This document shows positions 5,795-61,326 of a stretch of 64,000 bases of DNA, piece after piece. Both the position numbers and the translations under genes were made by a program. The notes beneath the pieces were generated by a model. It was not told the origin of the DNA and did no database searches. It saw only the letters and a list, made by a program, of their open reading frames with translations. The DNA lies in the IMG/VR virus record IMGVR_UViG_3300042502_001233, positions 62,001 to 126,000 of that record. The stretch is one strand, 5' to 3'. How positions within the stretch are numbered: the first letter of the stretch is position 1; each line of letters begins with the position of its first letter.

Positions 5795-6472
5795 TTTAGG
5801 GGGTAATTCAATTTTACTCCTGTTTGATTTTGGTTTCTTGTTGTCAAGATATTTTCTATTGCGCTCGGCCCTAGCCTCTTCTTCCAACATTTCTAATTCT
5901 TCTTCAGAATATTCTATTGGGTTACCATTTTCATCTACATAAGCTATGTGGTTAATGCTATTTATTTCATCTTGTGTGTCATAATCGCTGTAACCATTAA
6001 AACTATCTGGGTCTGTTACAATTATCACTTCTTTTTCTGATTGTGGTTGAATAATTTCTTCCACTATCTCATCGTCAATGTTTAAATCGAAATCATTTAA
6101 TTTTGGTACCAATTCTTCGTCAGAAAATGAAAACTTCAATCGAGTTAATTTCTCCAAAGAGTTTTGTTTAAAGATGTTTTTTAGTTCTTCAACTTTTAAT
6201 TTCAAAAGCTCATGTTTTTTTTCTCGCTCTTGATTCATTTTGATTGTTTTACCAACAAACCCTAGTAATTCGTCAACACCAATATTAGGTGCATCACTGT
6301 AAACCATAAAATAATTCAAAGATTCATCACCTTTAATTGTTTTTATTGTTTGGTCTGTTTGCACCGTCCAACCTTCTTTAAAAACTGCATCTATAACTGG
6401 TACTCCTTCTACATATCTAATACCTACTATATATGGTTGAAGCGCGTCTAATGTTTTTTGTATGTTTGACAT
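5792..6472 (-). CDS. Hypothetical protein
   Basis: 226-aa ORF; acidic central region. Confidence 0.8.
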   Translation of the reverse strand: MSNIQKTLDALQPYIVGIRYVEGVPVIDAVFKEGWTVQTDQTIKTIKGDESLNYFMVYSDAPNIGVDELLGFVGKTIKMNQEREKKHELLKLKVEELKNIFKQNSLEKLTRLKFSFSDEELVPKLNDFDLNIDDEIVEEIIQPQSEKEVIIVTDPDSFNGYSDYDTQDEINSINHIAYVDENGNPIEYSEEELEMLEEEARAERNRKYLDNKKPKSNRSKIELPPK

Positions 6473-6481
6473 ATTTTATTT

Positions 6482-6697
6482 TTAAATTGTAATACCTGTA
6501 AAAATTGCAGATAGTGCGTATGCAAGGGATAAACCTAACAAGAACAATGATTTGTTTGAAATAATGTACTTGCTTGTTTGACCTTCTTCATTGGTTTTGA
6601 ACATTGCTTGGATAAAATAATATCCATGTCTAAACACATTGAATATTGATAACAAGAATAACACTACCAATAATTTGTTAAGTATCGTCTCTAACAT
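6482..6697 (-). CDS. Small membrane protein (2 TM)
   Basis: Two hydrophobic stretches. Confidence 0.7.
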   Translation of the reverse strand: MLETILNKLLVVLFLLSIFNVFRHGYYFIQAMFKTNEEGQTSKYIISNKSLFLLGLSLAYALSAIFTGITI

Positions 6698-6705
6698 AAT
6701 GTTTG

Positions 6706-6885
6706 TTATTTTGCTTCTTTGTTCTTAGCAGAAACGTCTTGTCTCAAAGTTTGAGCCAAAGCTTTAATGTCTTGTAAACCTTTTCTAAGTCTTACACCAG
6801 CAGCTTTGTTGCTTTTTTCATAAAATTTAGTCGCATCTTCTTCTAATGCAATTACTAATCCTTTTAATTCGTTAAATTCATTCAT
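6706..6885 (-). CDS. Histone H1-like Hc1-family protein (59 aa; absent from ORF track)
   Basis: Manual translation MNEFNELKGLVIALEEDATKFYEKSNKAAGVRLRKGLQDIKALAQTLRQDVSAKNKEAK; the KFYEK.NKAAG.R.RK pattern is characteristic of Bacteroidota Hc1-like proteins. Confidence 0.85.
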   Translation of the reverse strand: MNEFNELKGLVIALEEDATKFYEKSNKAAGVRLRKGLQDIKALAQTLRQDVSAKNKEAK

Positions 6886-6887
6886 TG

Positions 6888-7124
6888 TTAATCGTTTTTT
6901 TGTTCAATGTTATTATTGTTATTATTGTTTAGCATAGTTTGGAGTTTAGCCACACTGGCTTCGTTATTAGCTATGCTAGCTAATATCATTTTAATCGAGC
7001 TAGATTTTTGGTCTATAGTTTCACTCGAATTAATTGTTTGTTCTAGTCTATCTTCCAATTTCATTTTATCGGTAGTTAGTTCTAAAAGTACTACGTTAAA
7101 TAATCTTTCTGTATTCATAAGCAT
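6888..7124 (-). CDS. Hypothetical coiled-coil protein
   Basis: Heptad-like pattern; poly-Asn tail. Confidence 0.65.
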   Translation of the reverse strand: MLMNTERLFNVVLLELTTDKMKLEDRLEQTINSSETIDQKSSSIKMILASIANNEASVAKLQTMLNNNNNNNIEQKND

Positions 7125-7162
7125 AAAACTACTATAAAAAAATTAAAAATAAATAGTAAAAC

Positions 7163-7642
7163 CTAATTTTTTTGTGTTTTTAGCGACATTTCCATTAATC
7201 GATAGATTTCTAGGAAGGTATCAATGTCTGCATTGGTCTTTAATTTGTTATAATCGAAGATGTCTAACCATAATTTTAATATAGTGTTATCCGTGTAATC
7301 TGATTTGTTTTTTTCTTTGTTAAAATAAAACACTTCGAACATAAATTCTGAAAAATACTCCATAATTCTTTCATTTTCAAAATAAATACCTTCTTCTTTG
7401 AAAATATCTATTGTTCGATTCCAGCACCAATTAAAATGGTTAGATTGTTCTTGTGGTGGTGTAACATCGTCACCCATATATGTATCAAAAACAGTAATCA
7501 ATAGCGATTGTACGAAATCACTATAAAGTTGACATTTCTCATACTTTATATTATTTTTATTATAGACCATAGATATCGCTTCCCAACTCATTGGGTTATT
7601 AATGTACGCTAAAAAACTTAACTTATTGTACTTATCATTCAT
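7163..7642 (-). CDS. Hypothetical protein
   Basis: 159-aa ORF with ATG. Confidence 0.75.
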   Translation of the reverse strand: MNDKYNKLSFLAYINNPMSWEAISMVYNKNNIKYEKCQLYSDFVQSLLITVFDTYMGDDVTPPQEQSNHFNWCWNRTIDIFKEEGIYFENERIMEYFSEFMFEVFYFNKEKNKSDYTDNTILKLWLDIFDYNKLKTNADIDTFLEIYRLMEMSLKTQKN

Positions 7643-17575: not shown

Positions 17576-19816
17576 TTAATTAAACGTTATTTTAGAAATA
17601 TTATTTTCTTTAACTACAGTAACCACGTTTGTTGACCAATCTTTAACGATATCGTTGTGTGTGATAAAGAAGACGATATCATACATGTCTTTTACTTTAT
17701 CAAACAACAATTTTAGTTTTTCAAGATTCTCTGGAGCCACTTTACCCAACACTTCATCAAACGTGATGAAATTAGGCATAGGTAGTGTAGATAGTTTCCC
17801 TAACACAGCTCTTAAAGCTAGACTGGCAGCAGTTTTTTCTAACCCAGACCCAGATTTTAACAATTTAGAAACACCATCTTTAACTAATAAAAACTGAACA
17901 TCGTTCTTATCATTAATAAATATCTCGATTTCAAAATCTACAACATCTTCTAATAATCTTTGAACTTCTGAATTGATAATTGGGAGAACTGAGCGCAATA
18001 CCAATTTACTAATACCTTTCTTACCAACCAATTCAATGTATATCTTGAATATTTTATCAACTTCCTCTTCTTTTTTTATAGTTTCAATAAGTTTTGTTTT
18101 TATACCAATATGTTCCGCGTTGATTCTTAATTCACTTTGAACTCGTTCGAGACTTCTGATTGTTTCGTCTTTTTTATATTCTTTAACTGAAATATCTGTA
18201 ATAATTTTACTAACAGCTATTTCTACACTACGATTTAACTCTATCGCTTCTAAGTTTAATTTGTATTTTTTCAAATCATTCTTTTTAGCAACAATTTGGT
18301 TTCTTAATCCACCCATTTCAACTTCTAATCTGTCTATATCCAATTCCTTTTTACCAATTGAGTCAGCAATTTTTTTGGTTTCATTTAAACCTTCAAGTTC
18401 TTCAACACTTTTTAAAAGTTTATCAGTAAGTTCTTTTACTTCTTTGTTTATTTTTTCAATCTCAACCTCATGTTTAGCTATATGTGCTGAATTATCAACA
18501 TCATCTAATTTTCTGTTACATGATTGACAAATACCACCAGCAATTAAATCGGATACAACTTTTTTAAGTCTTTTTGATTCGGCTTCTTTAACTGCTTTAT
18601 CCATATTTAATTTACTACCTAATTTTGTCAACTCATGATGTCTATCTTCATCAAATTCAATTTTACCTATCTCTTCGATTTCACTTTTTATAGTTGTTAC
18701 TTTACCACTTAACTCAACACCTTTATCAATGAGTGTTTTAATGTCATCTTCAAGTCTTTGGGGGTTTAATTCTGAAATTGTTACGTCAATTTTCTCTTTG
18801 CTGTTTAAAAGAGCATCTTTTTCAGTTTTTAACTCTTCCAAAGATTGTTTAGTAGTTTCTAAAGTTTCGTTTAAATCACTTTCTAGTTCATTATAGTTCA
18901 CAATTTTTTCATTGTGGTCATCAATCTCTTGACCCAAAGTTATAACGTCGTATTCGTTAGATTTCTTCTTTTTAGAAAATTCATTGTACATCGTTCTAGC
19001 GATTGCTTCTTTCATTTCAAGAACTTCTAAACCAATAAGTCTAGTAAGTATCTTACCAGATTCAGTTGTTGTCAATCCAATCAATTCATCCAAGTTTTTT
19101 TCAGTAGCCAAAACCAACATTTCAAAATCTTTTTCGGTTCCGATGCTTTCTTTTAACTTTTTAGTTGTTTGTTTGGCATCTTCTTCATTTAATTCCTCTT
19201 CTTCACCATCTGGTTGAATTTTATAGTAGTTTACTTTGTTTACAACAGTCCAACCACCACCTTTTTTAGAAGTACGTCTCATTTTTCTTTCAATGATAGT
19301 CTCTTCACCTTCAATTTCAATCATTCCACGAACAACCAACTCATTCTTTTCAGAGTATGTGTTGAATATTTGCTCGTTGGTATCTGTTTTGGTTGTACTA
19401 CCATGAAGCAAAAACTTAATAGCGTCGATTGTAAGCGTTGTATTATGTGATACGATTCCATTGGTATAATATTGATGGACTTCGGCTACTTGAATATCGT
19501 ATAATGTATCTTTTTCTTTTAATAATTCAATAGTAGCAACAGCACTATCACCATCGTTTGTTTGAATCATCTCACCAACTTTTATCTCTTTAAGGACAAC
19601 AAACTCATCATCCGTTTTCTTTAAACGATGATAATCAGCACCTTCAACAAACATTCCGTTTTGAAGTTCACATCTATAAACATCAGCATTTTCTTCTGTA
19701 ATTCCACACCACTCAATGTCTTTATAACCATATGGTGTATCAACTTTAAATCCTAGGTCTCCGTATTTTTGGTAAATATTATTTAATTCACCAATTGTAA
19801 TTTCTTTATTCTCCAT
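17576..19816 (-). CDS. sbcC: SbcC/Rad50 (gp46-like) ATPase, C-terminal fragment preceded by split-intein C part
   Basis: After ...GIVSHN comes TTLTIDAIKF (end of Walker A), coiled coils, CQSC zinc hook, SGSGLEK signature, ITFDEVLG Walker B; likely start MENKEIT at 19816. Confidence 0.9.
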   Translation of the reverse strand: MENKEITIGELNNIYQKYGDLGFKVDTPYGYKDIEWCGITEENADVYRCELQNGMFVEGADYHRLKKTDDEFVVLKEIKVGEMIQTNDGDSAVATIELLKEKDTLYDIQVAEVHQYYTNGIVSHNTTLTIDAIKFLLHGSTTKTDTNEQIFNTYSEKNELVVRGMIEIEGEETIIERKMRRTSKKGGGWTVVNKVNYYKIQPDGEEEELNEEDAKQTTKKLKESIGTEKDFEMLVLATEKNLDELIGLTTTESGKILTRLIGLEVLEMKEAIARTMYNEFSKKKKSNEYDVITLGQEIDDHNEKIVNYNELESDLNETLETTKQSLEELKTEKDALLNSKEKIDVTISELNPQRLEDDIKTLIDKGVELSGKVTTIKSEIEEIGKIEFDEDRHHELTKLGSKLNMDKAVKEAESKRLKKVVSDLIAGGICQSCNRKLDDVDNSAHIAKHEVEIEKINKEVKELTDKLLKSVEELEGLNETKKIADSIGKKELDIDRLEVEMGGLRNQIVAKKNDLKKYKLNLEAIELNRSVEIAVSKIITDISVKEYKKDETIRSLERVQSELRINAEHIGIKTKLIETIKKEEEVDKIFKIYIELVGKKGISKLVLRSVLPIINSEVQRLLEDVVDFEIEIFINDKNDVQFLLVKDGVSKLLKSGSGLEKTAASLALRAVLGKLSTLPMPNFITFDEVLGKVAPENLEKLKLLFDKVKDMYDIVFFITHNDIVKDWSTNVVTVVKENNISKITFN
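19442..19816 (-). mobile_element. Split intein C part (125 aa) of sbcC
   Basis: ITIGEL, EGADYHRL (block B-like His), LYDIQV (block F), YYTNGIVSHN/T (block G, His-Asn followed by Thr). Confidence 0.9.
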
Positions 19817-20021
19817 CTTTTTTATATAAATTAATTTCTTCAATTTCAAATTCAATACCACGAAGTTTATCTTTAGATTCAATACGGTTATTAATTAAAT
19901 CAAACACAGTTTCAATTTGTAAAAAAGGGCTATCGCCACTAATTATTACTAGGTATTGTATTCTTCTATATGATTTTTGTGTATATTTATAAACACCTTT
20001 TTTAATTTTATTTATTTCCAT
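19806..20021 (-). CDS. Small hypothetical protein (71 aa) inside the sbcC interruption
   Basis: Overlaps the endonuclease stop by 14 nt and the IntC start by 11 nt. Confidence 0.55.
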   Translation of the reverse strand: MEINKIKKGVYKYTQKSYRRIQYLVIISGDSPFLQIETVFDLINNRIESKDKLRGIEFEIEEINLYKKDGE

Positions 20022-21024
20022 TTTTTAAAAATTTTTTACATTTATTTATTATCTCTTGTTTGTTTTTTTTATATTCGGAATCCCAAACAACTAAAACTTC
20101 AAAACCTTTATTATTAGCTATTAACATTTTTTGTTTATCTTTATCCCAAATATCTTTAGCTGTTAAGTCTTTTCTAAAAGGGTTTGGATAATCATCTTTA
20201 TCATATTTATTTGGATTACCATGATAATCATCACCATTATACTCAATTATTTTTTTATTTTTTAAGTCAGTAAAATCATATCTATAAAAACCATTATCAT
20301 CAGTTAAAACAAATTCACCACCTTTTTTTGCAAAAAGAAAATAATTAATATCATTAATGTCAACTTTTTCTATTAACGTATAAAACAACTCTTGACTTAC
20401 TTCGGAATAACCAGATTTTAATTTACCATTTTTATAAAGTGTTTTTTGCCATTTTATTTGTCTTTCATTAAACTTAACTAACCCTTCTTCTGAACCATAT
20501 TTTTTAATACAGGTTTTTAAACTAAACGTTTGTTGTCTTTTAGAAACCATTTGTTTACTTTCTTTATCATCAAAACCTTTATTTAACCAATATTGGATAT
20601 TAGCACTTCCAAGTTTACCAGCGGCACTTCTTTTACCTTCTCGTTCTCCCCATTTTTTAGTACCTTCTTTTTCACCAAACCTAGCTATACAACCTCTTAA
20701 AGAAACCATTTTTTGACCTTCAATTTGTAGTATCGCTTCTTCTTCGGTATAACCATTTTTAACCCAATATTCAATATTTACTGGTCTTAAAGTTCTAATG
20801 TGGTCTTCAATTTTGTTTTCATTTAAACCTCTATCTATCCAATATTGTTTTGAATAAGGTGAACCTTTTGGTATTACAATCCCTAAATTTTTTAACCTAC
20901 TAGTTATAACACTAGGGTCAACATTAAATCTTAGTGCTATCTTATTAGTAGATTCAAAATTCTCATTATACAATTTTAACATTATTTTGATTTCATCATC
21001 ACTAAATTCTTTTCTTTTTCCCAT
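20008..21024 (-). CDS. Free-standing Vsr-like (EDxHD/DUF559-type) homing endonuclease with N-terminal HTH and repeated YW..xG motifs
   Basis: IIEYNGDDYHGNP...WDKD..K...GFEVLVVWDSEY; repeats YWIDRG / YWVKNG / YWLNKG and SL..CI..(F/Y)G..EG. Confidence 0.8.
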   Translation of the reverse strand: MGKRKEFSDDEIKIMLKLYNENFESTNKIALRFNVDPSVITSRLKNLGIVIPKGSPYSKQYWIDRGLNENKIEDHIRTLRPVNIEYWVKNGYTEEEAILQIEGQKMVSLRGCIARFGEKEGTKKWGEREGKRSAAGKLGSANIQYWLNKGFDDKESKQMVSKRQQTFSLKTCIKKYGSEEGLVKFNERQIKWQKTLYKNGKLKSGYSEVSQELFYTLIEKVDINDINYFLFAKKGGEFVLTDDNGFYRYDFTDLKNKKIIEYNGDDYHGNPNKYDKDDYPNPFRKDLTAKDIWDKDKQKMLIANNKGFEVLVVWDSEYKKNKQEIINKCKKFLKNGNK

Positions 21025-21055
21025 TTTAACTTTTATATCTATAATTATTATTTAC

Positions 21056-21065
21056 TATAAATATA
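21056..21065 (-). promoter_or_regulatory. Late-type motif TATATTTATA upstream of the sbcC-inserted endonuclease
   Basis: Same core ATTTAT as structural-gene motif. Confidence 0.5.
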
Positions 21066-21100
21066 ACCGTTTAACCAAAAAGGTAAAGACAAAGAAATAA

Positions 21101-21682
21101 TTATTTTAGTTCATCTGGTAAAAAACCTAACTTTTTAATGATTTCATTTTTGTTAAATTGTATATTAACCTTAGTATCAGCTCTAACGCATTTACCACCT
21201 TGGTTAGCTGGAATAGAGTTAACGATAGTTAATCCATTTAAACGGCTAAAAGGTACGTAATTCTGTTCGCCAAAAGATAAGAAGTTATCAATCATAATCC
21301 ATTTGATGGCCCATGATTTATGTTGAATATTGTTTAGGTCAATATTTAGTTCACCGTTAACTCTTTCATCTAATGCAAGTATTCTTTTAAAATCAACATT
21401 TTTGTTATCTCTTTCAATAAGCTCTTTCATAAGGGCTCTTTGATAACTTATGTCCATAATGTTTTCAATACCAGCACCTGTAATCTCAACCATATCGCCT
21501 TTGTCAGTTTTTCTGACTGGACGATAGATTACGTTGATATTGTTTTTGTTAACCCCGTACTTAGTAGCAAAGTAAGTTTTGATTCTATTCTTTGCTTCAC
21601 GACTATAGTTGTGTGGTTGGTCTGACCATTCTACCTTAACTTTAGAATTTGGAGATAAAATTTTCATTTCGTTTTTCATCAT
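21101..21682 (-). CDS. sbcC: SbcC/Rad50 N-terminal fragment ending in split-intein N part
   Basis: IKWIMIDNFLSFGEQN...LNGLTIVNSIPANQGGK (Walker A start), then CVRADTKVNI..., then stop. Confidence 0.9.
   Translation of the reverse strand: MMKNEMKILSPNSKVKVEWSDQPHNYSREAKNRIKTYFATKYGVNKNNINVIYRPVRKTDKGDMVEITGAGIENIMDISYQRALMKELIERDNKNVDFKRILALDERVNGELNIDLNNIQHKSWAIKWIMIDNFLSFGEQNYVPFSRLNGLTIVNSIPANQGGKCVRADTKVNIQFNKNEIIKKLGFLPDELK
21104..21190 (-). mobile_element. Split intein N part (29 aa) of sbcC
   Basis: CVRADTKVNIQFNKNEIIKKLGFLPDELK; block A-like C-x3-DT-x-V immediately after the Walker A Lys. Confidence 0.85.
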
Positions 21683-21779: not shown

Positions 21780-21950
21780 ATGAGAAAAAAACTAAATGAA
21801 TCAGATAAAAAAGTAAAATTAACCACGACAATAAACCCTAAGCTATATAATATTATATATAATAGAGAAACAAACTTATCAAAATATATTGAAAAATTAG
21901 TTTATAATGATTTAATTAAAAATAACGAAATTGAAACTTTTTATTTATAA
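21780..21950 (+). CDS. Small ribbon-helix-helix-like protein (56 aa; absent from ORF track)
   Basis: MRKKLNESDKKVKLTTTINPKLYNIIYNRETNLSKYIEKLVYNDLIKNNEIETFYL; strand-helix-helix pattern; GATATTTATA at 21755-21764; TAATG overlap with the HNH gene. Confidence 0.6.
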   Translation: MRKKLNESDKKVKLTTTINPKLYNIIYNRETNLSKYIEKLVYNDLIKNNEIETFYL

Positions 21951-22462
21951 TGGGGAAACCAAATCTATATAATACATACGAAGAACGATTGGAAGCTAGG
22001 AGAGAAACGGTAAGAGCTTATTATCAAAGAAATAAAGAAAAATGTGCTGAACGTAAAAAAATTTACAATCAAAAAAATAAAGTTGAATTGCAAAAGAAAA
22101 GAAACGAATATAGAAAAAAAAGAAAAGAAACTGATGAACTATATAAACTAACAAATTCAATTAGACGTAATATAAATAACGCATTTAAACGAAATGGGTA
22201 TAATAAAACATCTAAAACATTTGAGTTATTATCTTGTTCTTTTGAAGAATTCAAAACATATCTTGAATCATCGTGGGAATCATGGATGAACTGGGATAAT
22301 TATGGGTTATATAATGGAAAACCAAATTATGGTTGGGATATTGACCATATTATACCATCTTCTAGTGCAATGACAGAAGAGGAATTAATTAAATTAAACC
22401 ATTTTACTAACCTACAACCACTTTGTAGTTATATTAATAGAAACATAAAAAGGGATTATTAA
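21950..22462 (+). CDS. Free-standing HNH endonuclease
   Basis: GWDIDHIIP...LNHFTNLQPLCSYIN; basic N-terminal helix. Confidence 0.85.
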   Translation: MGKPNLYNTYEERLEARRETVRAYYQRNKEKCAERKKIYNQKNKVELQKKRNEYRKKRKETDELYKLTNSIRRNINNAFKRNGYNKTSKTFELLSCSFEEFKTYLESSWESWMNWDNYGLYNGKPNYGWDIDHIIPSSSAMTEEELIKLNHFTNLQPLCSYINRNIKRDY

Positions 22463-23141: not shown

Positions 23142-23371
23142 TATAAATTTGTTATTACCTCTGTCCCGTTTTCGAGGTCTTCAAGGGATTTTATTTTAAA
23201 TTGATAGTATGGTGATTTGTTATCAACATCGTGCTCTGTAAAGCTCTTAGAATCCAAATCCCACAATAAAAACCCATGTTTGGTTACATTCTCACCAAAG
23301 TTTTGTTGGATAAGACTAGAAGGCATAACAACTGGTATTATTTTTTTAATTTTAATTTTCTTTTTTTCCAT
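23141..23371 (-). CDS. sbcD: SbcD/Mre11 (gp47-like) nuclease, C-terminal fragment (76 aa, likely start MEKKK)
   Basis: IPVVMPSSLIQQNFGENVTKHGFLLWD corresponds to the (Y/M)xGSxxQxxFGE...KG region that follows motif V in SbcD. Confidence 0.8.
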   Translation of the reverse strand: MEKKKIKIKKIIPVVMPSSLIQQNFGENVTKHGFLLWDLDSKSFTEHDVDNKSPYYQFKIKSLEDLENGTEVITNL

Positions 23372-24281
23372 ATTCTTTAATTTTATTAAATAAAACATAC
23401 TTAAAATTTTTCTTTTTGATATCCGACTCCCAAAACCTAACCAAATTATAAGATTTGTCTTTAGCTAATTTATTTTTAAATTTATCATTTTCGACATTTA
23501 TTTGTTGTGTTTCAGTTAATATATCACTTTCATTATATTTTATTGGATTAACATGCCAATAATCACCATCAGCTTCTATTAACAAATTAAAATCGATTAG
23601 ATAAAAATCATAAGTTTTAAATTTATTTTCGTCATAATAAACATCATATTGTGTTTCAAATTTAACATTATTATCCATTAATAACTTACCAATTTTAACT
23701 TCAATACCGCTTTTTTTCATTTTTTTTAACCCATCTCTCATTAATTCAAATGACGTTTTACCGTATTTTTCTAAACATATGTTTTCCCTATTTTTTATTT
23801 GTTTTTCTAAAGTCAATATACATTCAACACCATATCGTTTTAAATTACTATTAATTCTTTTGTTATTAGATGTTTCATTAGTCCCCATCCAAAAACCATT
23901 ATCCTCAAAGAATTTTTCTTGACCAATTTTTACTTTTTCTTTATGTTCTTCGGTTTCCCATAATTTTTTAACCCTTTCAGAATTCCATTTTTTCCATTCA
24001 TCAGTATGTTTAATGTTATAAGCTGGGTTACCTTCTTTAAGATAAAGTTCTTTTTGGTGAGAATCTTTACAAACTCTAGAACAGTATTTTTTACCATTAT
24101 CTATTTTATTTGGTAATACTTCAAACTCTTTATCACATAATAAACAATTAATTTTAACTCTATCAACTTTTAACTTTTTATATCCAATATGTTGACATTC
24201 TATTGAACAATAAACTTTATTTTTAGTTTCTTTTTGACAATTTTTACAGTTATTCATTTCTCTAAATTTTTGTTGTATCAT
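23352..24281 (-). CDS. Free-standing Vsr-like (EDxHD/DUF559-type) homing endonuclease with N-terminal Cys-rich zinc-binding repeats
   Basis: CKNC...YCSIEC, CLLC...YCSRVC; YDFYLIDFNLLIEADGDYWHVNP...ND.FK...YNLVRFWESDI. Confidence 0.85.
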   Translation of the reverse strand: MIQQKFREMNNCKNCQKETKNKVYCSIECQHIGYKKLKVDRVKINCLLCDKEFEVLPNKIDNGKKYCSRVCKDSHQKELYLKEGNPAYNIKHTDEWKKWNSERVKKLWETEEHKEKVKIGQEKFFEDNGFWMGTNETSNNKRINSNLKRYGVECILTLEKQIKNRENICLEKYGKTSFELMRDGLKKMKKSGIEVKIGKLLMDNNVKFETQYDVYYDENKFKTYDFYLIDFNLLIEADGDYWHVNPIKYNESDILTETQQINVENDKFKNKLAKDKSYNLVRFWESDIKKKNFKYVLFNKIKEYGKKEN

Positions 24282-24289
24282 TATTTATT

Positions 24290-24298
24290 AATAAATAC
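24290..24298 (-). promoter_or_regulatory. Late-type motif GTATTTATT upstream of the sbcD-inserted endonuclease
   Basis: Same core as the structural-gene motif, within a 39-nt intergenic gap. Confidence 0.5.
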
Positions 24299-24320
24299 AA
24301 CAACAAAACTAAAAAGATAA

Positions 24321-25001
24321 TTATTCATCTAAAACCCACCCAATTTTTTCATATTCATATAATTCTTCTTCATATATTTCTTTAGTTTCCTTAAAAATTA
24401 AAACACCTCTTTTATGGATATCACCGCACATAACCATGTCACAACCTTTAAATATATCTAAATTATAACCATGTTCTATTTCGTAACCAATATCTGTAGT
24501 TGAACCAACTAATGGACCATGAAATAAACCTATATACGTTTTATCTTCACCAAACTGTACTCTAGCTGCTTCAATATCTGGCCTTGAATTACCTTCAAAA
24601 ATTGAATATACACACCAAACAACGTTGTCATCCAAATAACATTTAGATTCTTTGAAATAGTTTATTTCTTTGTCTGGAAGGAATTGTACCATTGGTGTGA
24701 TTGAATCCATACGGTCTTTGTTATTCTCTAACAAATCGTGGTTTCCAGCTATCATAACCACTGGGGCTATTTCTTCTAGTTTTCTAAGAAACCACGTACC
24801 AAGCAATAATTGCTCGTTTGAAATCACAATCTTTTGGTGAACCAAGTCACCAGCCACTACGATTCTAATTTCTTCTCTTTTGTAGTCAACCAATAAATCG
24901 GTTAAATCTGCCATAAGCGTTTTAAACACATCCAAGTACTCATCGTGCATTCGAAAAGTTCTTATGTGTATATCAGCTAAGTGAACTATCTTCTTTATCA
25001 T
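24321..25001 (-). CDS. sbcD: SbcD/Mre11 nuclease, N-terminal fragment
   Basis: All five metallophosphoesterase motifs: ADIH, AGD, GNHD, FHG, GDIH; ends in an acidic tail and a stop. Confidence 0.9.
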   Translation of the reverse strand: MIKKIVHLADIHIRTFRMHDEYLDVFKTLMADLTDLLVDYKREEIRIVVAGDLVHQKIVISNEQLLLGTWFLRKLEEIAPVVMIAGNHDLLENNKDRMDSITPMVQFLPDKEINYFKESKCYLDDNVVWCVYSIFEGNSRPDIEAARVQFGEDKTYIGLFHGPLVGSTTDIGYEIEHGYNLDIFKGCDMVMCGDIHKRGVLIFKETKEIYEEELYEYEKIGWVLDE

Positions 25002-52421: not shown

Positions 52422-53519
52422 TTAAGTTGAGCAACCGAAACATTCAAACTGGCTATCTTTTGGTTTTTCAGGTTGATTTGCAATTTGGCTACTAGCTAGT
52501 TTTGAATTTGCTTCTAATTTTGATTTTGTTCTAGTATAATATACACCAGTCTTTAGACCACCTTTCCAAGCATACATAAGTGCACTAGCTATTTTACCGT
52601 ATTTTGCATCAGAATGATATACGTTTAATGATTGTGATTGGTCAACATATTTGTTTCTGATGATTGATAAATCTAACAATACTCTTTGAGAAATTTCCCA
52701 AACATCTTTGTATCTAAATCTTATTTCTTCTGGTATTTCCACAATGTTTTGGATACTACCTTGGTTTTTAATGACTTTGTCAATAATAGTTGAAGTCCAA
52801 AGATTATTTTCAATTAGTTCATTAACCAAATATTTGTTAACAACCAAAAACTCACCTTGACCTACTCTTCTTGTAAATAAGTTAGCTGTGGCTGGTTCAA
52901 AAGATTCAAATACACCTAACAAAATTGCTGAAGACGCTGTTGGCATCAATCCTAACAATAAACTGTTGTACATTGGAATTGCTTCTCCTTCTGCTTTTGG
53001 TGACCACCCTTCAATATATGTTTCACCTTTTGAATAACGACTGCCTTCCCACGCTGGATAGTTTTCACCTTTTTCTTCAGCCAATAACATAGATTCAATA
53101 ACAGCTGTTTTATACATTGTTTCGAATATATCGTTATTCCATTGTTTAGCTTCTTCACTTTCAAAAGCAATTTTCTTTTTAGCAAAGAAATCAGCCAACC
53201 CAGCAACACCAATAGCCAAAGCTCTTTGGTCCATTCCAGCTTTCTCACTCCAACTGTCACTCCATTTGTTTTTGTCGATTACTTGGTTAAGCGCTCTAAC
53301 CAAAACTCTAGTTGTCTGTGCAATTGTTTCCAATGTATCGTGTTCGGCCAAATTAACTGATGCCAACGTACATTGTGGTGTGTATTTTGGTTTAGACGCT
53401 TGCATTACCTCAATACAATTGTGCACCAATATATCATTAGCGAAAAAATTATGATTATCTTTTATTGTTAAATCATAAACTGGTAACTTTGTTTCTATTT
53501 TTTTTATTTTAATCCCCAT
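52422..53519 (-). CDS. nrdA: Ribonucleotide reductase class Ia alpha subunit, C-terminal fragment preceded by split-intein C part
   Basis: ...LVHN then CIE (catalytic Cys/Glu), CTLASVNL, RALAIGVAGL, MPTASS, DQSQS, KTGVYYTR, C-terminal CFGC. Confidence 0.95.
   Translation of the reverse strand: MGIKIKKIETKLPVYDLTIKDNHNFFANDILVHNCIEVMQASKPKYTPQCTLASVNLAEHDTLETIAQTTRVLVRALNQVIDKNKWSDSWSEKAGMDQRALAIGVAGLADFFAKKKIAFESEEAKQWNNDIFETMYKTAVIESMLLAEEKGENYPAWEGSRYSKGETYIEGWSPKAEGEAIPMYNSLLLGLMPTASSAILLGVFESFEPATANLFTRRVGQGEFLVVNKYLVNELIENNLWTSTIIDKVIKNQGSIQNIVEIPEEIRFRYKDVWEISQRVLLDLSIIRNKYVDQSQSLNVYHSDAKYGKIASALMYAWKGGLKTGVYYTRTKSKLEANSKLASSQIANQPEKPKDSQFECFGCST
53418..53519 (-). mobile_element. Split intein C part (34 aa) of nrdA
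   Basis: MGIKIKKIETKLPVYDLTIKDNHNFFANDILVHN/C; blocks F and G. Confidence 0.95.
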
Positions 53520-53520
53520 A

Positions 53521-54561
53521 TTAATTTATTATTTCATTTATATTTGTTAATATTTTTTGTAGATAAATGTATTTTATATTATTTTCACTACAATATTTTT
53601 TAGCCGCTTTAATTTTCATTTCTTCATTTATTTTTCCTTTTTCACCTCTAATAAACCCTTTAATTTCTAATAATATTTTATGACCTTCATATTCAATAAG
53701 AAAATCTGGCAAATAAAGAGTACCATCTTCTTTTTGTATATAAAACGATTCATAACTATATTTAATTCCATTTAGTTCTAAAAATTCTATTGTCTTTAAC
53801 TCCCAAGAACTTCTATATCTAACAATAGTTTTATTTAAACAATTTTTAACTTTAATAAAACCAGTTTTAAAAAACTTTGTTTTACCCATATTTTCATTTC
53901 TAACAATACTAATACTTGATATTATGGACATCATTTCTGGATAAATTTTTTCCACATTTTCATCAGTTATTACAACATTTTTAAGTTTATCTCTAAAATT
54001 CAAATACGTTGATTCATCTAAATATTTATCAGATTTTAAAAATTTTTTAAGTTTTTTTATTTTAAAGTCTTTTGATTTTCTATTATTAGAATTAATTAAT
54101 TTATATAATTCTTTTATTTCACTATCTGTCTTATATAAAACATCTATTTTTTTATTTCTTAAAACCTTTATCTTAAAATCAATACTAGAATTTTGTTTTC
54201 TTTTTGTTTCTCTAAAATTATCACCTCTATTAATACCCTTCATTTTAATCTTCATATTTTCTGAATGTTCTGGTCTTAATTTATTTCTAAAACTAGAACC
54301 TTTCATAAAATTAGTTAAATTATCAGGCCAACCAAATCTACTACCTTTCCATATTTTTAAATTATCGTTTTTAGAATGTTTATTTTTAAAATCATTAAAA
54401 GTTAAAATATTATCTAGATATAAGTTTTTTAAAGCTTTGTATTTTTCATCATTACCATTTGTTATTTTTGTAATATAATTTATTAATTCAATTTCAAATA
54501 AATTAATAAAACATTCGTTATTTATTAAATCTTTTAATTTTGTTTGTTTTTTTATTATCAT
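53521..54561 (-). CDS. Free-standing TnsA-like PD-(D/E)xK homing endonuclease
   Basis: YRSSWE...YSYE......YLPDFLI....LLEIKG; GATATTTATT at 54575-54584. Confidence 0.8.
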   Translation of the reverse strand: MIIKKQTKLKDLINNECFINLFEIELINYITKITNGNDEKYKALKNLYLDNILTFNDFKNKHSKNDNLKIWKGSRFGWPDNLTNFMKGSSFRNKLRPEHSENMKIKMKGINRGDNFRETKRKQNSSIDFKIKVLRNKKIDVLYKTDSEIKELYKLINSNNRKSKDFKIKKLKKFLKSDKYLDESTYLNFRDKLKNVVITDENVEKIYPEMMSIISSISIVRNENMGKTKFFKTGFIKVKNCLNKTIVRYRSSWELKTIEFLELNGIKYSYESFYIQKEDGTLYLPDFLIEYEGHKILLEIKGFIRGEKGKINEEMKIKAAKKYCSENNIKYIYLQKILTNINEIIN

Positions 54562-54617
54562 AATCAGTTTTTCTAATAAATATCTAAAATTATTATAAAA
54601 ACCAATTTATGTATAGG

Positions 54618-56099
54618 TTATTGTAAAATTTTTAATATATCTGTTTCAAATAAATCTTTAGCCATTACATACCCTCTATTAATAGTATAAATTTGATGTT
54701 CTGGGGTACAAATTATCTTTTTATTTGATTCATAATCTGTTATCTCTAACACGTCAGCATTTTTGTTTGTCATAGCAGAAGCTAGTAACTCTTTATATTC
54801 AACAACATTGTTTTCAATATTAAAAGATTTTACCAAAATATTTTTATTTTCTTTAAATAATTCATTTAATGTTTTAATATCAGTTCTATGTTCTTCACCT
54901 TCTAAAATTATATCAATCAACGAATCTTCTGAGATACATAAGTTTGATTGTTTAATAGGGCCTATGTTATCTTGCATGTTACGTTTGTTCGCGTTATCTT
55001 TGAACATTACGTAAGGTCTACCACTTTCAACTTGTGATTTAACAATAGCATCAAAAATATCTTTAGGGTTAACTTTTTTACCCAACCCTAAATCAACAGC
55101 TTTTTGGTATTCAGCGTTGAATTTCTCACCATGTAAATTATATAACGGTTTTAAACCAGCTTTTTTAATGTCGTTAGGACAGAACAAATACCAATCCTCA
55201 CCTTTCTCCAATTTTTCCATAAACAAGTCGTTTACGATAATTGAAGTAAACAAATCTTTTGTTCTTAATTCAGCAGAACCAATAGGTAATGTTAATTCTA
55301 AGAAATCTATGATATCTCTATGCCATAATGACAAATACAATGCACAACTTCCAGAACGAGAACCTTGTTTGTAAAACCTCATTTTAGCTTGCACCATATC
55401 AGCTAATCTAACAACACCACCAGCATTACCTTGAAAAGACTCTACAATGCTTTCTTTACTACGAAGTGGGTCAATTAATAATCCAATACCAGAACCTTCT
55501 TTAGATGCCGAAGAAATCTTCTTAAGGGTTTCTTCGATACCTTCAAATGAATCATCTTCTAAGTGTGTAAGGTTACAGCTAATCATACCGTTTCTTTTAG
55601 GTATACCAGCGTTTGTATACGTAGGTGTGGCAAAGTTACCTCTTTTAGATTTTAATTCTTCTAATAATTCTTCTCTGTCAGCTTCATTATCTTCATGTAA
55701 ATGCATAGCTACTCTTTCGTACATACATGAAGGTAATTCTAATGGAGTTTTCTTTTCATCTCTCATTGAGTATTTACTCAAAAAAGTTGTAGCGGCAAAG
55801 AAGTCGTAGGTTAAATCTACTGGTTGTAATTCTTTACCTATTAATTTTGATTGGCGACTTAATAAAATACGACCACCCAGCAATGAATAGTCTGGGTGTT
55901 GTATAATTTTATCAGCAGCTTTGAAAGCGATAATCTCGTCGATTTCAGTTGTTGTGATGTTATCCGTAATCAATGGAATAACCTCTTGGAACAAAACGTC
56001 AGAATCAATTTTCAACCCTTTGGCTTGTGTTTTGATTCTCGTTAAAATTTTGTTAGGCGTAAAAGCCTGTGTCGATTTGTCTCTTTTTTGTATTTTCAT
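54618..56099 (-). CDS. nrdA: Ribonucleotide reductase alpha subunit, N-terminal fragment ending in split-intein N part
   Basis: ATP-cone-like N-terminus, ATPT..NAG, SCNL, GGGIG-like GSGIG, RSGSCALYL..WH, ESGRPY..FKD.AN, KQSNL, then CISEDS... Confidence 0.95.
   Translation of the reverse strand: MKIQKRDKSTQAFTPNKILTRIKTQAKGLKIDSDVLFQEVIPLITDNITTTEIDEIIAFKAADKIIQHPDYSLLGGRILLSRQSKLIGKELQPVDLTYDFFAATTFLSKYSMRDEKKTPLELPSCMYERVAMHLHEDNEADREELLEELKSKRGNFATPTYTNAGIPKRNGMISCNLTHLEDDSFEGIEETLKKISSASKEGSGIGLLIDPLRSKESIVESFQGNAGGVVRLADMVQAKMRFYKQGSRSGSCALYLSLWHRDIIDFLELTLPIGSAELRTKDLFTSIIVNDLFMEKLEKGEDWYLFCPNDIKKAGLKPLYNLHGEKFNAEYQKAVDLGLGKKVNPKDIFDAIVKSQVESGRPYVMFKDNANKRNMQDNIGPIKQSNLCISEDSLIDIILEGEEHRTDIKTLNELFKENKNILVKSFNIENNVVEYKELLASAMTNKNADVLEITDYESNKKIICTPEHQIYTINRGYVMAKDLFETDILKILQ
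54621..54938 (-). mobile_element. Split intein N part (106 aa) of nrdA
   Basis: CISEDSLIDI (block A), IICTPEHQIYT (block B TxxH), GYVMAKDL. Confidence 0.95.
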
Positions 56100-56112
56100 A
56101 TTTATATTTTAA

Positions 56113-57066
56113 TTAGAAGTCTTCATCAAACATACCATCAGTAGTTGTAGGTATTTCAACTCTTGTGTATTCACCATCTCTTTTCTCAAAGAAATTGTTT
56201 TTTGCCGATAAACCAATTCTGGCCATGTAATCCAACGGGTTTGTTACGTTGAATTCTAAATCACAACCAAAATCGTTAAGAACGATATCTGTTACGTATT
56301 GTACATAACGAACCATATCATCTTTGGTCATACCTTGTAAACCATCTGGCATGCTGTCTTCAACAAAAACCTTTTCAATTTCATAACACCCTAAGATGAT
56401 ATTTCTTAATTCTTCTTTTGAAAGTTTATAATCATCTTTCAAATAATTTTTGTATAAGTTAAGTGCAAACTCATAATGGAATGTTTCATCTCTAAGGATT
56501 AATTCATTCATACCACCCAATCCAGGCATTTTATTCTTGCTTCTAAACCAAAACACACCAGAGAATACACTAGCAAATGAAATCCCTTCAACACAAGCAA
56601 AAGCCACAAGTCTGTGACCAAAAGATGGGTGATGAATCCAATCTTCAGCCCATGAAGCTTTTTTAGCAACCGCTTGGTTGTTTTCCATGGAATTAAATAA
56701 TTCATCTCTTTCGATAAGGTTTTTTATGTATGTTTCAATCAATAAAGAATAACCATTCGCATGAACTTGTTCGATAAATGTTTGATGTCCATAGAAGTAT
56801 TGTGCTTCTAATAATTCAACTTCATTTAAGAAGTTTGTTGCTAAGTTATCAATAACCAAACCATCTGATATAGCAAAAAATGCTAAAATATTTTTTAGAT
56901 AAATTTTTTCAGCATCTTTCAACCCATCAAAATCATCCTTACTTAAATCTATTTCTTCCGCAACCCATGTTTGGGCTTCGGCTTTTTTATACATTTGCCA
57001 CAAGTCATTATGTATGACTGGGAAAATGGAATACCTTTTTTTTAGTGTACTGTCTTTTAAATACAT
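56113..57066 (-). CDS. nrdB: Ribonucleotide reductase class Ia beta subunit
   Basis: W..EEIDLSKD, FFA.SD, E.VH...Y, EGI.F...F, RDE..H motifs. Confidence 0.95.
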   Translation of the reverse strand: MYLKDSTLKKRYSIFPVIHNDLWQMYKKAEAQTWVAEEIDLSKDDFDGLKDAEKIYLKNILAFFAISDGLVIDNLATNFLNEVELLEAQYFYGHQTFIEQVHANGYSLLIETYIKNLIERDELFNSMENNQAVAKKASWAEDWIHHPSFGHRLVAFACVEGISFASVFSGVFWFRSKNKMPGLGGMNELILRDETFHYEFALNLYKNYLKDDYKLSKEELRNIILGCYEIEKVFVEDSMPDGLQGMTKDDMVRYVQYVTDIVLNDFGCDLEFNVTNPLDYMARIGLSAKNNFFEKRDGEYTRVEIPTTTDGMFDEDF

Positions 57067-57086: not shown

Positions 57087-58520
57087 TTATTCTTCTGTTA
57101 ATTTTATTGAATTAAGCATATCCGTACTCAATATATTAGTTCGAGCACCCATAACCTCATTAATTCTTTTTTGACTAAATTCTGCTTTGTCTTGTTTGTG
57201 TTCACTATTGGTTCTAGCTCCTTTGCTATCCCCCATATCAATTTGAATACTAGCGTTATCAAATCTGATATCTGTAAAAACAACACCATCTTTACCAAAA
57301 CGAGATTTAAGAATAGCCATAGTCGCTGTTCCGTCCTCTTTTTGGTCTAGTGTTTTGGCGATTGACACAATAAAGTGACCAATTTGCCCTTTTTTAATAG
57401 AACCACCCATTTGATTAGCATGTACTACGTCAGCACCAATAGATGTTCTATTACCTTGTACTGCGGTCCAACCAGCGATATCTAGCTCTGACAACAAACT
57501 TTCGTACTGTCTCATTACACTACCTTCTCCAGCGTTTATATCATCAAATTTTCTTGATGGTTCAACACAATCAATATAGTCCAACAACACCATATCTGGT
57601 TTAAAACCTTGTGCTGTTAATTTTCTGATGTATTGTCTAATCACTGGCATAGTTGTACCATCACTTGAAAACTTTTTAAGTTTTAACCCACCTTTTTTAG
57701 CTTTGATTTCAGCATCCATTTTGGCCGCCATTTCATAAATCTCTTCTTTGTGTAAAGACAAACTATTCAAGTCGTGGTTTGACCAACAAGATAAATGTTT
57801 TCTTTGAATTACCTTAGGGTTGTCTTCAAAAAAGATTTGTAAAACTTTATAACCCATGTTAACCGCTGTATTGGCTAATTTTGTCATCATGGTTGTCTTA
57901 CCAACACCAAACGGTGCTAATATAACACCTAATTCTGTTTTTGATAAACCACCATCCATAATTTCATCTAACCCTTTAATACCAGTTGGGATTGGTTTTC
58001 TGAAATCGTCTATAAGAACGTCTTTAATGTTGTCAAAGATATCCATACCATCATCTTTCATATCACCGTGTTCCAAAGCTTTACGAAGCTTTGACTCACA
58101 TTCGTGATAATCATTGATATCACCTCTATCAATGATTTTAGAAATCTCTTCGATTGTTTTCTTAACTTCTTTGTACTTACAAAAATTCATAGCGATTTCT
58201 TGTATTTTTAAAGAATCGTTTAAATCACTTTCTTCTATTTTTCTAAGTTGTCTACCAATTTGTTTAAGAACCATATCTGATTTAATTCCATCATATAATC
58301 TAATTTCTAAACTTGGTATATCTAGGTTAACTTCATCAATAGTTTTAGCATCTTTAATAGCTGCTACAATAGTTTTTAGAGCTGGGTCTTTAAAATAGTT
58401 TGGACTTACAATGTCCAAAATTGAATTAGCAAATTTTCTATCGCTAAGTATTTGCGCTATCAGCTTAATCTGATACGTATCCCCTAAATATGAAAAATCG
58501 CTCGTGTCTACTCTAATCAT
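57087..58520 (-). CDS. Replicative DNA helicase (DnaB/T4 gp41-like)
   Basis: APFGVGKTT Walker A, LLDYID Walker B, TAVQGNR, ILKSRFG; ATATTTATT at 58557-58566. Confidence 0.9.
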   Translation of the reverse strand: MIRVDTSDFSYLGDTYQIKLIAQILSDRKFANSILDIVSPNYFKDPALKTIVAAIKDAKTIDEVNLDIPSLEIRLYDGIKSDMVLKQIGRQLRKIEESDLNDSLKIQEIAMNFCKYKEVKKTIEEISKIIDRGDINDYHECESKLRKALEHGDMKDDGMDIFDNIKDVLIDDFRKPIPTGIKGLDEIMDGGLSKTELGVILAPFGVGKTTMMTKLANTAVNMGYKVLQIFFEDNPKVIQRKHLSCWSNHDLNSLSLHKEEIYEMAAKMDAEIKAKKGGLKLKKFSSDGTTMPVIRQYIRKLTAQGFKPDMVLLDYIDCVEPSRKFDDINAGEGSVMRQYESLLSELDIAGWTAVQGNRTSIGADVVHANQMGGSIKKGQIGHFIVSIAKTLDQKEDGTATMAILKSRFGKDGVVFTDIRFDNASIQIDMGDSKGARTNSEHKQDKAEFSQKRINEVMGARTNILSTDMLNSIKLTEE

Positions 58521-61290: not shown

Positions 61291-61326
61291 TTTTTTGTTT
61301 TATTTATAAAATTGTTATTTTAGAAC

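Follow-up and report, generated by a model that had tools for sequence, protein, structure and literature searches.

Gene organisation of the locus

We analysed a 64,000-nt stretch of DNA (hereafter the window), comprising bases 62001-126000 of the virus record IMGVR_UViG_3300042502_001233, in which nrdA, encoding the large ribonucleotide reductase (RNR) subunit, is broken by a split intein whose two halves flank a free-standing endonuclease gene. The source record is 362,018 bp long and rated complete by CheckV, and the window has a G+C content of about 30%. The sequencing runs that contain this stretch are lake-water metagenomes from many studies, and the phage carrying the fractured nrdA is a 362-kb lake phage. 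In the list of open reading frames (ORFs) and their translations, three adjacent, tightly packed minus-strand genes were found at 52422-56099, preceded on that strand by genes for a DnaB-type helicase and NrdB. The features of the locus are the following.

54618-56099, minus strand: gene for nrdA N-extein plus N-intein, 493 aa, ending ...KQSNL/CISEDS... and then the stop codon
54939..56099, minus strand: nrdA N-extein, residues 1-387 (ATP-cone, all-alpha domain and first barrel part), ending ...KQSNL
54618..54938, minus strand: N-intein (IntN), 106 aa plus stop codon; Cys1 is residue 388, and block B TPEH stands at intein position 78
54556..54615, minus strand: hairpin of the 56-nt spacer; the start codon of the nuclease gene (54559-54561) is paired with its 3' arm
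53521..54561, minus strand: free-standing endonuclease gene, 346 aa, with a helical N-terminal region and a C-terminal PD-(D/E)xK domain
53524-53889, minus strand: C-terminal PD-(D/E)xK nuclease domain, residues 225-346
53800-53802 (E254), 53704-53706 (D286), 53665-53667 (E299) and 53659-53661 (K301), minus strand: catalytic candidates in the nuclease gene
52422-53519, minus strand: gene for C-intein plus nrdA C-extein, 365 aa (MGIK...LVHN/CIEVMQ), of which the first 34 aa are the C-intein
53418..53519, minus strand: C-intein (IntC), 34 aa, blocks F/G, ending ...HNFFANDILVHN
52422..53417, minus strand: nrdA C-extein, residues 388-718 plus stop codon, starting at the radical Cys (CIE...) and ending with the CFGC tail
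56113..57066, minus strand: nrdB, 317 aa, for the small subunit of RNR, co-oriented and immediately upstream; the syntenic gene of related loci L027/L030 has Pfam Ribonuc_red_sm

The nuclease and C-intein genes meet at TAA-T-ATG, the C-intein ATG lying 1 nt past the nuclease stop; in relatives this junction ranges from a 10-nt overlap to a 27-nt gap. Both cassette junctions are spanned without a single difference by contigs from lake metagenomes of three other studies (X2, 53143-54714; X3, 53588-55092; X4, 52826-54108), and the three-gene layout was seen again in more than 20 independent contigs. The fractured nrdA is not an assembly artefact, a point for which a first-pass annotation, made from the DNA letters and translations, had wanted spanning reads. 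One contig joint in run X2, from 52701 to 55089 (20-nt side), lies off the cassette boundaries and was attributed to another organism.

A split class 1 intein interrupts the active-site loop of NrdA

Pfam analysis placed PF03477, PF00317 and PF02867, all above their cut-offs, on the N-extein gene, and showed that the RNR barrel domain is itself divided, with profile positions 2-213 on the first gene and positions 204-523 of PF02867 on the C-extein in the third. Cys35 of the C gene aligns with the radical Cys429 of human R1, within the N427/C429/E431 triad. The three Pfam families, the active-site triad, the Cys pair of the CFGC tail and the adjacent nrdB identify a class Ia NrdA, and the fractured gene is the only RNR large-subunit gene of the phage. 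What the first-pass annotation had read here, namely an nrdA fractured with a 106-aa N-intein tail and a C gene running MGIK...LVHN/CIEVMQ, is exact in the ORFs, translations and Pfam matches; its identification of the +1 residue as the thiyl-radical Cys agrees with the alignment to human R1, and the active-site loop it expected splicing to rebuild is read exactly, as SNL/CIE, at the junction of intact sister alleles. Its further statement that deoxynucleotide synthesis depends on trans-splicing can be kept for the phage's own enzyme, which has this sole large-subunit gene, but it had left the host enzyme out of account.

The N part of the Pfam Intein_splicing model (positions 1-92) covers the final 100 residues of the first gene, and its C part (positions 125-155) covers the opening 34 residues of the third, with PF14890 scores of 27.5 and 29.2 bits, each half covering only its own part of a model whose curated cut-off is 35.8. 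All residues expected of a class 1 intein are present, including Cys388 as Cys1, TPEH at intein position 78, the terminal ...LVHN and the +1 Cys, and the N-intein carries a net charge of -8. IntN is 45-59% identical to same-site N-inteins of unrelated phages, including Yersinia phage TG1, and IntC is 53-91% identical to same-site C-inteins elsewhere. These data identify a split class 1 intein placed exactly before the thiyl-radical Cys. In structure prediction, the IntN/IntC complex had an ipSAE (interaction prediction score from aligned errors) of 0.79, against 0.00 for the best of three controls; three runs shared at least 92% of contacts, and the pLDDT (predicted local distance difference test) of the partner was at least 74. 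The mark applied to such predictions is attained by 51 of 78 solved complexes and by 2 of 108 mismatched pairs. By this model, and by analogy with the same-site intein NrdA-2, the two halves would associate and ligate the exteins.

The closest characterised relative is NrdA-2 from the Global Ocean Sampling metagenome, which splices in cis and in trans and belongs to an orthogonal library (Pinto et al. 2020, PMC7090010). The two share the SNL/C junction, lengths of 106 and 33-34 aa, charge polarity and clear homology (PMC7090010), with about half of the IntN positions and 23 of 33 IntC positions identical when compared by eye against the printed sequence. Unlike NrdA-2, which has the junction SNL/CNE with Asn at +2, the window locus has Ile at +2 and is a different allele. 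The last 13 residues of the window intein are near-identical to those of NrdJ-1 and NrdA-2, and cross-reaction with either is plausible because of this conserved C-terminal block. The proposal that the pair could serve as an orthogonal tool is weakened by the same near-identity and by the presence of NrdA-2 in the library; with this relative already characterised, the intein offers little for protein ligation.

The cassette comes and goes among sister phages, some of which carry a rival

When the N-extein was used in a word search, dozens of intact NrdA proteins were recovered, each of 718 aa (387 + 331); over residues 200-387 their identity is 95-100%, and their contigs reach 345 kb. The intact allele P0039 (locus L027), which has the gene order of the window, reads ...KQSNL-CIEVMQ... 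uninterrupted and is identical to the window exteins at 386 of 389 (N) and 327 of 330 (C) residues. At the DNA level, the intact nrdA of L027 (99% protein and about 96% DNA identity) reads ...AACTTG/TGTATTGAA..., and comparison shows the cassette to be an exact, in-frame insert of 1521 nt (53418-54938) between ...AACTT(A/G) and TGTATTGA.... 

In a maximum-likelihood tree of 113 N-exteins, from which eight rows that were truncated or without the junction motif were left out, 12 alleles are split and 101 intact. The state changes at least nine times on this tree, seven of the changes being forced by well-supported branches, and two sets of identical exteins hold both states. Compared with the window, loci on distant phage backbones are 22-26% identical in the exteins, but 59% in IntN, 68% in IntC and 45% in the nuclease. 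As parts of the cassette are more alike than the exteins across distant backbones, the cassette moves between lineages. The pattern is that of a homing element, present or absent at one exact site in close relatives and found again in distant hosts, and the cassette still comes and goes among sister phages. Ratios of nonsynonymous to synonymous substitution rates (dN/dS), which are rough values since synonymous sites are near saturation, came to about 0.1 in the exteins, 0.11-0.19 in the two halves of the intein and 0.32-0.34 in the nuclease; all parts of the cassette are under purifying selection.

A third state was found in some sister phages with exteins 85-96% identical, which hold another split intein (about 103 + 33 aa) in the same nrdA. 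Its halves are 35-40% and 50-56% identical to those of the window, and its nuclease is a GIY-YIG/NUMOD3 protein of 392-399 aa. This rival cassette occupies the following positions.

L028 5029-6228, sister phage: rival cassette
L029 5010-6188, sister phage: rival cassette

Its junctions read ...SNLC-CLDGE... in the N gene and ...VHN-CEIF... in the C gene, so that, judged by these sequences, it is apparently inserted one codon downstream, after the radical Cys. Insertion after this Cys is the point that Dassa et al. (PMC2677866) describe for NrdJ.

The endonuclease has a canonical PD-(D/E)xK core

A word-based search found full-length relatives of the nuclease in 29 clusters, and in an alignment of 27 homologues, the most distant of them 37% identical, 23 positions are invariant, among them E254, P285-D286 and E299-x-K301. 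The family profile matches T7 endonuclease I (1M0D) at E 9.5e-5, with E20/D55/E65/K67 of that enzyme falling on E254/D286/E299/K301, and a search of solved structures with this profile gave no match to Vsr or I-Bth0305I (3R3P). At E<=0.01, Pfam endonuclease I (Phage_endo_I) matches 19 of the 27 family members and TnsA-like_N 15 (best 3.5e-8). The window nuclease itself reaches 25.3 bits with PF08722 (Tn7_TnsA-like_N), under the cut-off of 26.5, and 24.5 bits with PF05367 (T7 endonuclease I), under the cut-off of 29.1; the distant relative P0178 scores exactly 26.5 on PF08722.

In the AlphaFold (AF2) model of the nuclease (mean pLDDT 87.9), the N-terminal region is helical and the C-terminal domain is alpha/beta. 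Exhaustive structural comparison gave the N-domain of TnsA, residues 37-168, as the best fold match (Z 9.0, root-mean-square deviation 3.7 A over 109 residues), followed by Vsr (Z 7.3), VRR-NUC (7.2), I-Bth0305I (7.1) and Bax1 (7.0), all within the PD-(D/E)xK superfamily, to which the nuclease belongs. In these models the fold margin between TnsA and Vsr is small and the separation is not sharp, as one superfamily fold is shared; the distinction was therefore made by catalytic motif. The EDxHD family is defined by a signature that comprises E170, D196, H213 and D222 in I-Bth0305I (PMC3239194). Unlike that family, the window family has the canonical Lys and lacks the defining His and second Asp: its nuclease-domain alignment has no conserved His and no second Asp after the ExK strand, and a profile comparison with an EDxHD-like nuclease of the same window was negative. 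As a control, two EDxHD-like nucleases of the window also missed 3R3P and Vsr in single-sequence searches, so the absence of a Vsr match is carried by the profile search and the motif.

The term 'TnsA-like' nevertheless fits the catalytic core only, because the fold is shared, the domain order is another and the Pfam scores lie just under their cut-offs. TnsA (1T0F) has its nuclease at the N-terminus, followed by a TnsC-binding C-domain, and works in a transposon, whereas the nuclease domain here is C-terminal, after a helical region of 225 residues. Identity with TnsA was rejected, as the domain order is reversed, TnsA_C gives no match and no transposition partners such as TnsB/TnsC lie nearby; the gene is surrounded by the two nrdA halves, by nrdB and by a gene for a baseplate protein. 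T7 endonuclease I differs as well, being a 149-aa junction resolvase, not a C-terminal nuclease in a split-intein cassette. The first-pass reading of this protein as TnsA-like and not Vsr-like is supported for the catalytic core and by the missing EDxHD signature, with the small fold margin and the domain order as caveats.

The N-terminal 225 residues gave no family, Atlas or clear fold match. Its motif R-P-E-H-S-x-x-M-K looks like NUMOD3, and an Atlas cluster of similar shape bears the name 'NUMOD3/TnsA-like', but Pfam finds no NUMOD3 on the excised sequence, and the likeness is no more than a lead. 

The nuclease gene is single-copy in the phage genome. An exhaustive profile search of 1.84 billion representatives found 30 proteins at E<=1e-30 and 113 at E<=1e-10. 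Five distant relatives that match over most of their length, a small sample of this list chosen apart from proteins matching the nuclease domain alone, were placed; each is flanked by the split-intein halves of an RNR gene, which is of class I for three of them (L031, L032, L116) and a class II nrdJ for the other two (L033, L034). They retain the S-x-x-E, P-D-F and E-x-K-G motifs. Altogether, 13 of 13 distinct placements of nuclease relatives are between RNR split-intein halves, in nrdA or nrdJ.

The spacer hairpin and expression signals

The spacer hairpin before the nuclease gene has a folding energy of -11.4 kcal/mol (z -3.2), and none of 200 shuffles folds as well. At the same place, hairpins with different stem sequences were found in five of seven related loci (z -3.1 to -9.7) and were absent in two. 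The spacers were folded singly because their lengths differ too much; RNAalifold on a MAFFT alignment of them gave no consensus structure. 

Several loci have a promoter-like motif, ACATAAATT, ahead of the nuclease gene, but it was set aside as it is not enriched in the window (4 copies vs 4.9 expected). The T4-type late-promoter word TATAAATA has 30 matches in the window vs 16 expected, a number that 0 of 100 shuffles reach, and several copies stand just upstream of minus-strand gene starts, for example at 61301, 37755, 34015 and 21757; the nuclease spacer holds no exact TATAAATA.

Probable maintenance of the mobile cassette by trans-splicing and homing

We consider it probable that the locus carries a mobile cassette of 1521 nt, made of N-intein, homing-endonuclease gene and C-intein, that sits in frame between the Leu387 and Cys388 codons of the phage's only class Ia RNR large-subunit gene and persists by trans-splicing and homing. 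In this scheme, the two nrdA genes would be translated separately, and the acidic N-intein and the C-intein, with its basic N-terminal strand, would associate and trans-splice by the standard class 1 route. Cys1 would form a thioester that is attacked by the +1 Cys, which is to become the thiyl-radical residue; the last Asn of the C-intein would then cyclise, an S-to-N shift would follow, and the product would be an NrdA of 718 aa whose SNLCIE loop is the native one. The predicted spliced sequence matches the uninterrupted sister alleles at about 99% of residues. The nuclease most likely cuts uninterrupted nrdA near the Leu/Cys codons during co-infection by related phages, whereupon recombinational repair would copy the whole cassette in, and the hairpin over its start codon probably holds its translation low on read-through transcripts.

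Several observations weigh against this interpretation. The tree cannot separate gain from loss, and no co-conversion tract was found beside the cassette in the extein comparisons. The first 180 nt of the C-extein are only 90.6% identical to the nearest intact allele, compared with about 96% for the rest, and were examined as a candidate tract; however, the first 180-240 nt vary in every pair compared and are as divergent in other pairs, including split against split, so this stretch is a variable region. Silent changes at -1 (TTG to TTA) and +9 (GAA to GAG) were likewise rejected as cassette-linked, both variants being common in the 79 intact alleles, and are ordinary polymorphisms. Each intein half, and the nuclease domain of the window protein, score below the curated Pfam cut-offs, and the score of the IntN/IntC complex may stem from the model's memory of solved split inteins. 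Freshwater metatranscriptome contigs cover 52743-53192 and 55489-56200 at 95-99% identity, which are extein parts only; coming from a variant alike to that degree, these contigs can show neither absence nor transcription.

An unlikely alternative is that the nuclease is inactive or a domesticated passenger, the cassette being inherited vertically and its patchiness arising from loss by recombination with intact alleles. It would account for a nuclease dN/dS about three times that of the exteins, the missing co-conversion tract, a cassette in only 12 of 113 close alleles and the inseparability of gains and losses. Against it, the catalytic E/D/E/K and about 20 further positions are invariant among the 27 homologues and kept in distant nrdJ-associated relatives, the dN/dS is well under 1, and a cassette more conserved than its host gene across distant phage backbones requires transfer between lineages.

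That the split has a regulatory role beyond selfish mobility, with splicing that needs two reduced cysteines, or a late-made half, gating RNR, appears highly improbable. Both nucleophiles are indeed cysteines, and the locus has three separate gene starts with a hairpin before the middle gene; yet about 90% of close sister phages are without the cassette, and other sister phages carry an unrelated second cassette at the neighbouring codon. This rarity and the second cassette nearby speak for parasitism at a conserved site more than for adaptation. Least probable of all is that the NrdA fragments function unspliced, as a non-covalent assembly with the intein halves as a dimerisation handle: although a fragmented nrdA working without ligation is documented for Aeromonas phage Aeh1 (PMC3045599; described in PMC2677866), the break here lies between Leu and the radical Cys within the active-site loop, where about 140 intein residues would probably block catalysis, Cys1, T-x-x-H, the terminal H-N and the +1 Cys are all kept under purifying selection, and the same-site NrdA-2 splices.

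Relation to known fractured genes and homing endonucleases

The arrangement is a 'fractured gene' in the sense of Dassa et al. 2009 (PMC2677866), and both arrangement and intein are of known kinds. That paper reports 26 fractured loci, of which seven interrupt nrdA at precisely the same point, and GIY-YIG and Vsr-like are the only nuclease types it names. The first-pass annotation was thus right that split-intein nrdA loci are known, and right in part on the Vsr-like nucleases, as known fractured loci carry GIY-YIG enzymes too. Like NrdA-1 to NrdA-7, the window locus has its genes on one strand, the same insertion point, a short spacer, a hairpin in the 5' untranslated region and a phage origin. 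The published spacers are 27-51 nt, compared with 56 nt here, and in 15 of 27 published loci the nuclease and C-intein genes overlap, by 6-69 bp, in contrast to the 1-nt gap in the window (PMC2677866). The hairpin is read there, after the Aeh1 work, as translational repression (PMC2677866). 

Unlike the nuclease types named in PMC2677866, the window nuclease has a canonical D...ExK core. It resembles I-Bth0305I and the EDxHD nucleases (PMC3239194) in that these are free-standing or intron-borne phage nucleases also found between split-intein halves, modular, with an N-terminal DNA-binding part and a restriction-enzyme-like fold. 

With the cassette proposed here, I-Ssp6803I, a small tetramer, shares a canonical PD-(D/E)xK core and use in homing; it was missing among the sequence and fold matches of the window nuclease. 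I-Ssp6803I is the recognised PD-(D/E)xK homing endonuclease (PMC2677866; PMC3384342) and is intron-encoded in a cyanobacterial tRNA gene.

A full-text search of a limited library found no paper on a TnsA- or endonuclease-I-like nuclease in an intein or fractured gene, and members of the family may have been seen earlier in published NrdA/NrdJ loci and filed as Vsr-like. The new elements are the nuclease lineage, its strict tie to RNR split inteins and the three-state polymorphism. We tentatively propose, at somewhat less than even confidence, that the 346-aa protein belongs to a homing-endonuclease lineage not described before, in which a canonical core like that of endonuclease I and TnsA is joined to a modular scaffold of phage type. 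This lineage would have specialised on the RNR codons surrounding the thiyl-radical Cys, in nrdA and nrdJ, would always be found inside a split intein and would compete in one phage population with a GIY-YIG cassette one codon away.

Further inteins and nucleases in the phage and its relatives

In the cultured, T4-like Yersinia phage vB_YenM_TG1 (L001 2726-6373), an allelic split intein occupies the same nrdA site. Its 316-aa 'homing endonuclease' has no Pfam family and no similarity to the window nuclease; a second nuclease gene lies between nrdA-C and nrdB, and in the record the two halves are entered as distinct RNR proteins. A second interruption of the nrdA C-extein is seen in a more distant phage with the same cassette as the window (L005/L006, 5739-7699), where a 501-aa ORF without Pfam family (6110-7615) separates the C-extein pieces. 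The neighbouring DnaB helicase gene contains inteins in L029 (1-2510) and L007 (1-1002), with an 842-aa product with LAGLIDADG and a HINT match, and the window DnaB (57087-58520, 477 aa) has no intein.

A second fractured gene of the window, sbcC/gp46-like, lies at 17576-21682 on the minus strand. Its N gene (21101-21682) runs as far as the P-loop ...GGK and then has only some 29 residues of intein (CVRADTKV...); the nuclease gene (20008-21024) encodes 338 aa with an E-x-N-G-D-D-Y-H motif and weak DUF559 and helix-turn-helix matches; and the C gene (17576-19882) starts with a long C-intein, matched by Intein_splicing over residues 11-147, whose last residues are HN and whose +1 residue is Thr. 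The split seems atypical, the N half being very short; Dassa 2009 (PMC2677866) reports such an intein for a terminase. The same strand holds an sbcD/gp47-like phosphoesterase ORF (24321-25001) that is only 226 aa long and, after it, one of 309 aa (23352-24281) with zinc-finger-like Cys pairs, an E-A-D-G-D-Y-W-H motif and a PvuRts1I-like N match (E 1.2e-4); the C-terminal half of sbcD was not located in this analysis. The sbcD-like locus (23352-25001) resembles the intein-less SbcD-like fracture of PMC2677866. Between sbcC and sbcD, a 170-aa ORF (21950-22462), the sole sizeable plus-strand ORF of that stretch, has a weak HNH match (E 0.026) and may be a free-standing nuclease gene. Outside the window, intein-like matches were found at G000:C1:25692-27052, 221328-221645 and 238325-238792, one of them apparently another split pair; with these, the phage genome holds at least four or five inteins.

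Implications

In lake jumbo phages of a single lineage, one and the same pair of codons in an essential gene is found in three states, namely empty (79 intact alleles), holding a split intein with a PD-(D/E)xK nuclease, or holding, one codon downstream, a split intein with a GIY-YIG nuclease, which together constitute a well-populated natural experiment. As the exact bases of the empty site are known, synthetic DNA can serve to test directly how specific cleavage is, whether homing occurs and how the two endonucleases compete. If the nuclease is active, it would widen the set of catalytic scaffolds used in split-intein homing and would be a second example of a canonical PD-(D/E)xK homing enzyme, of quite different build.

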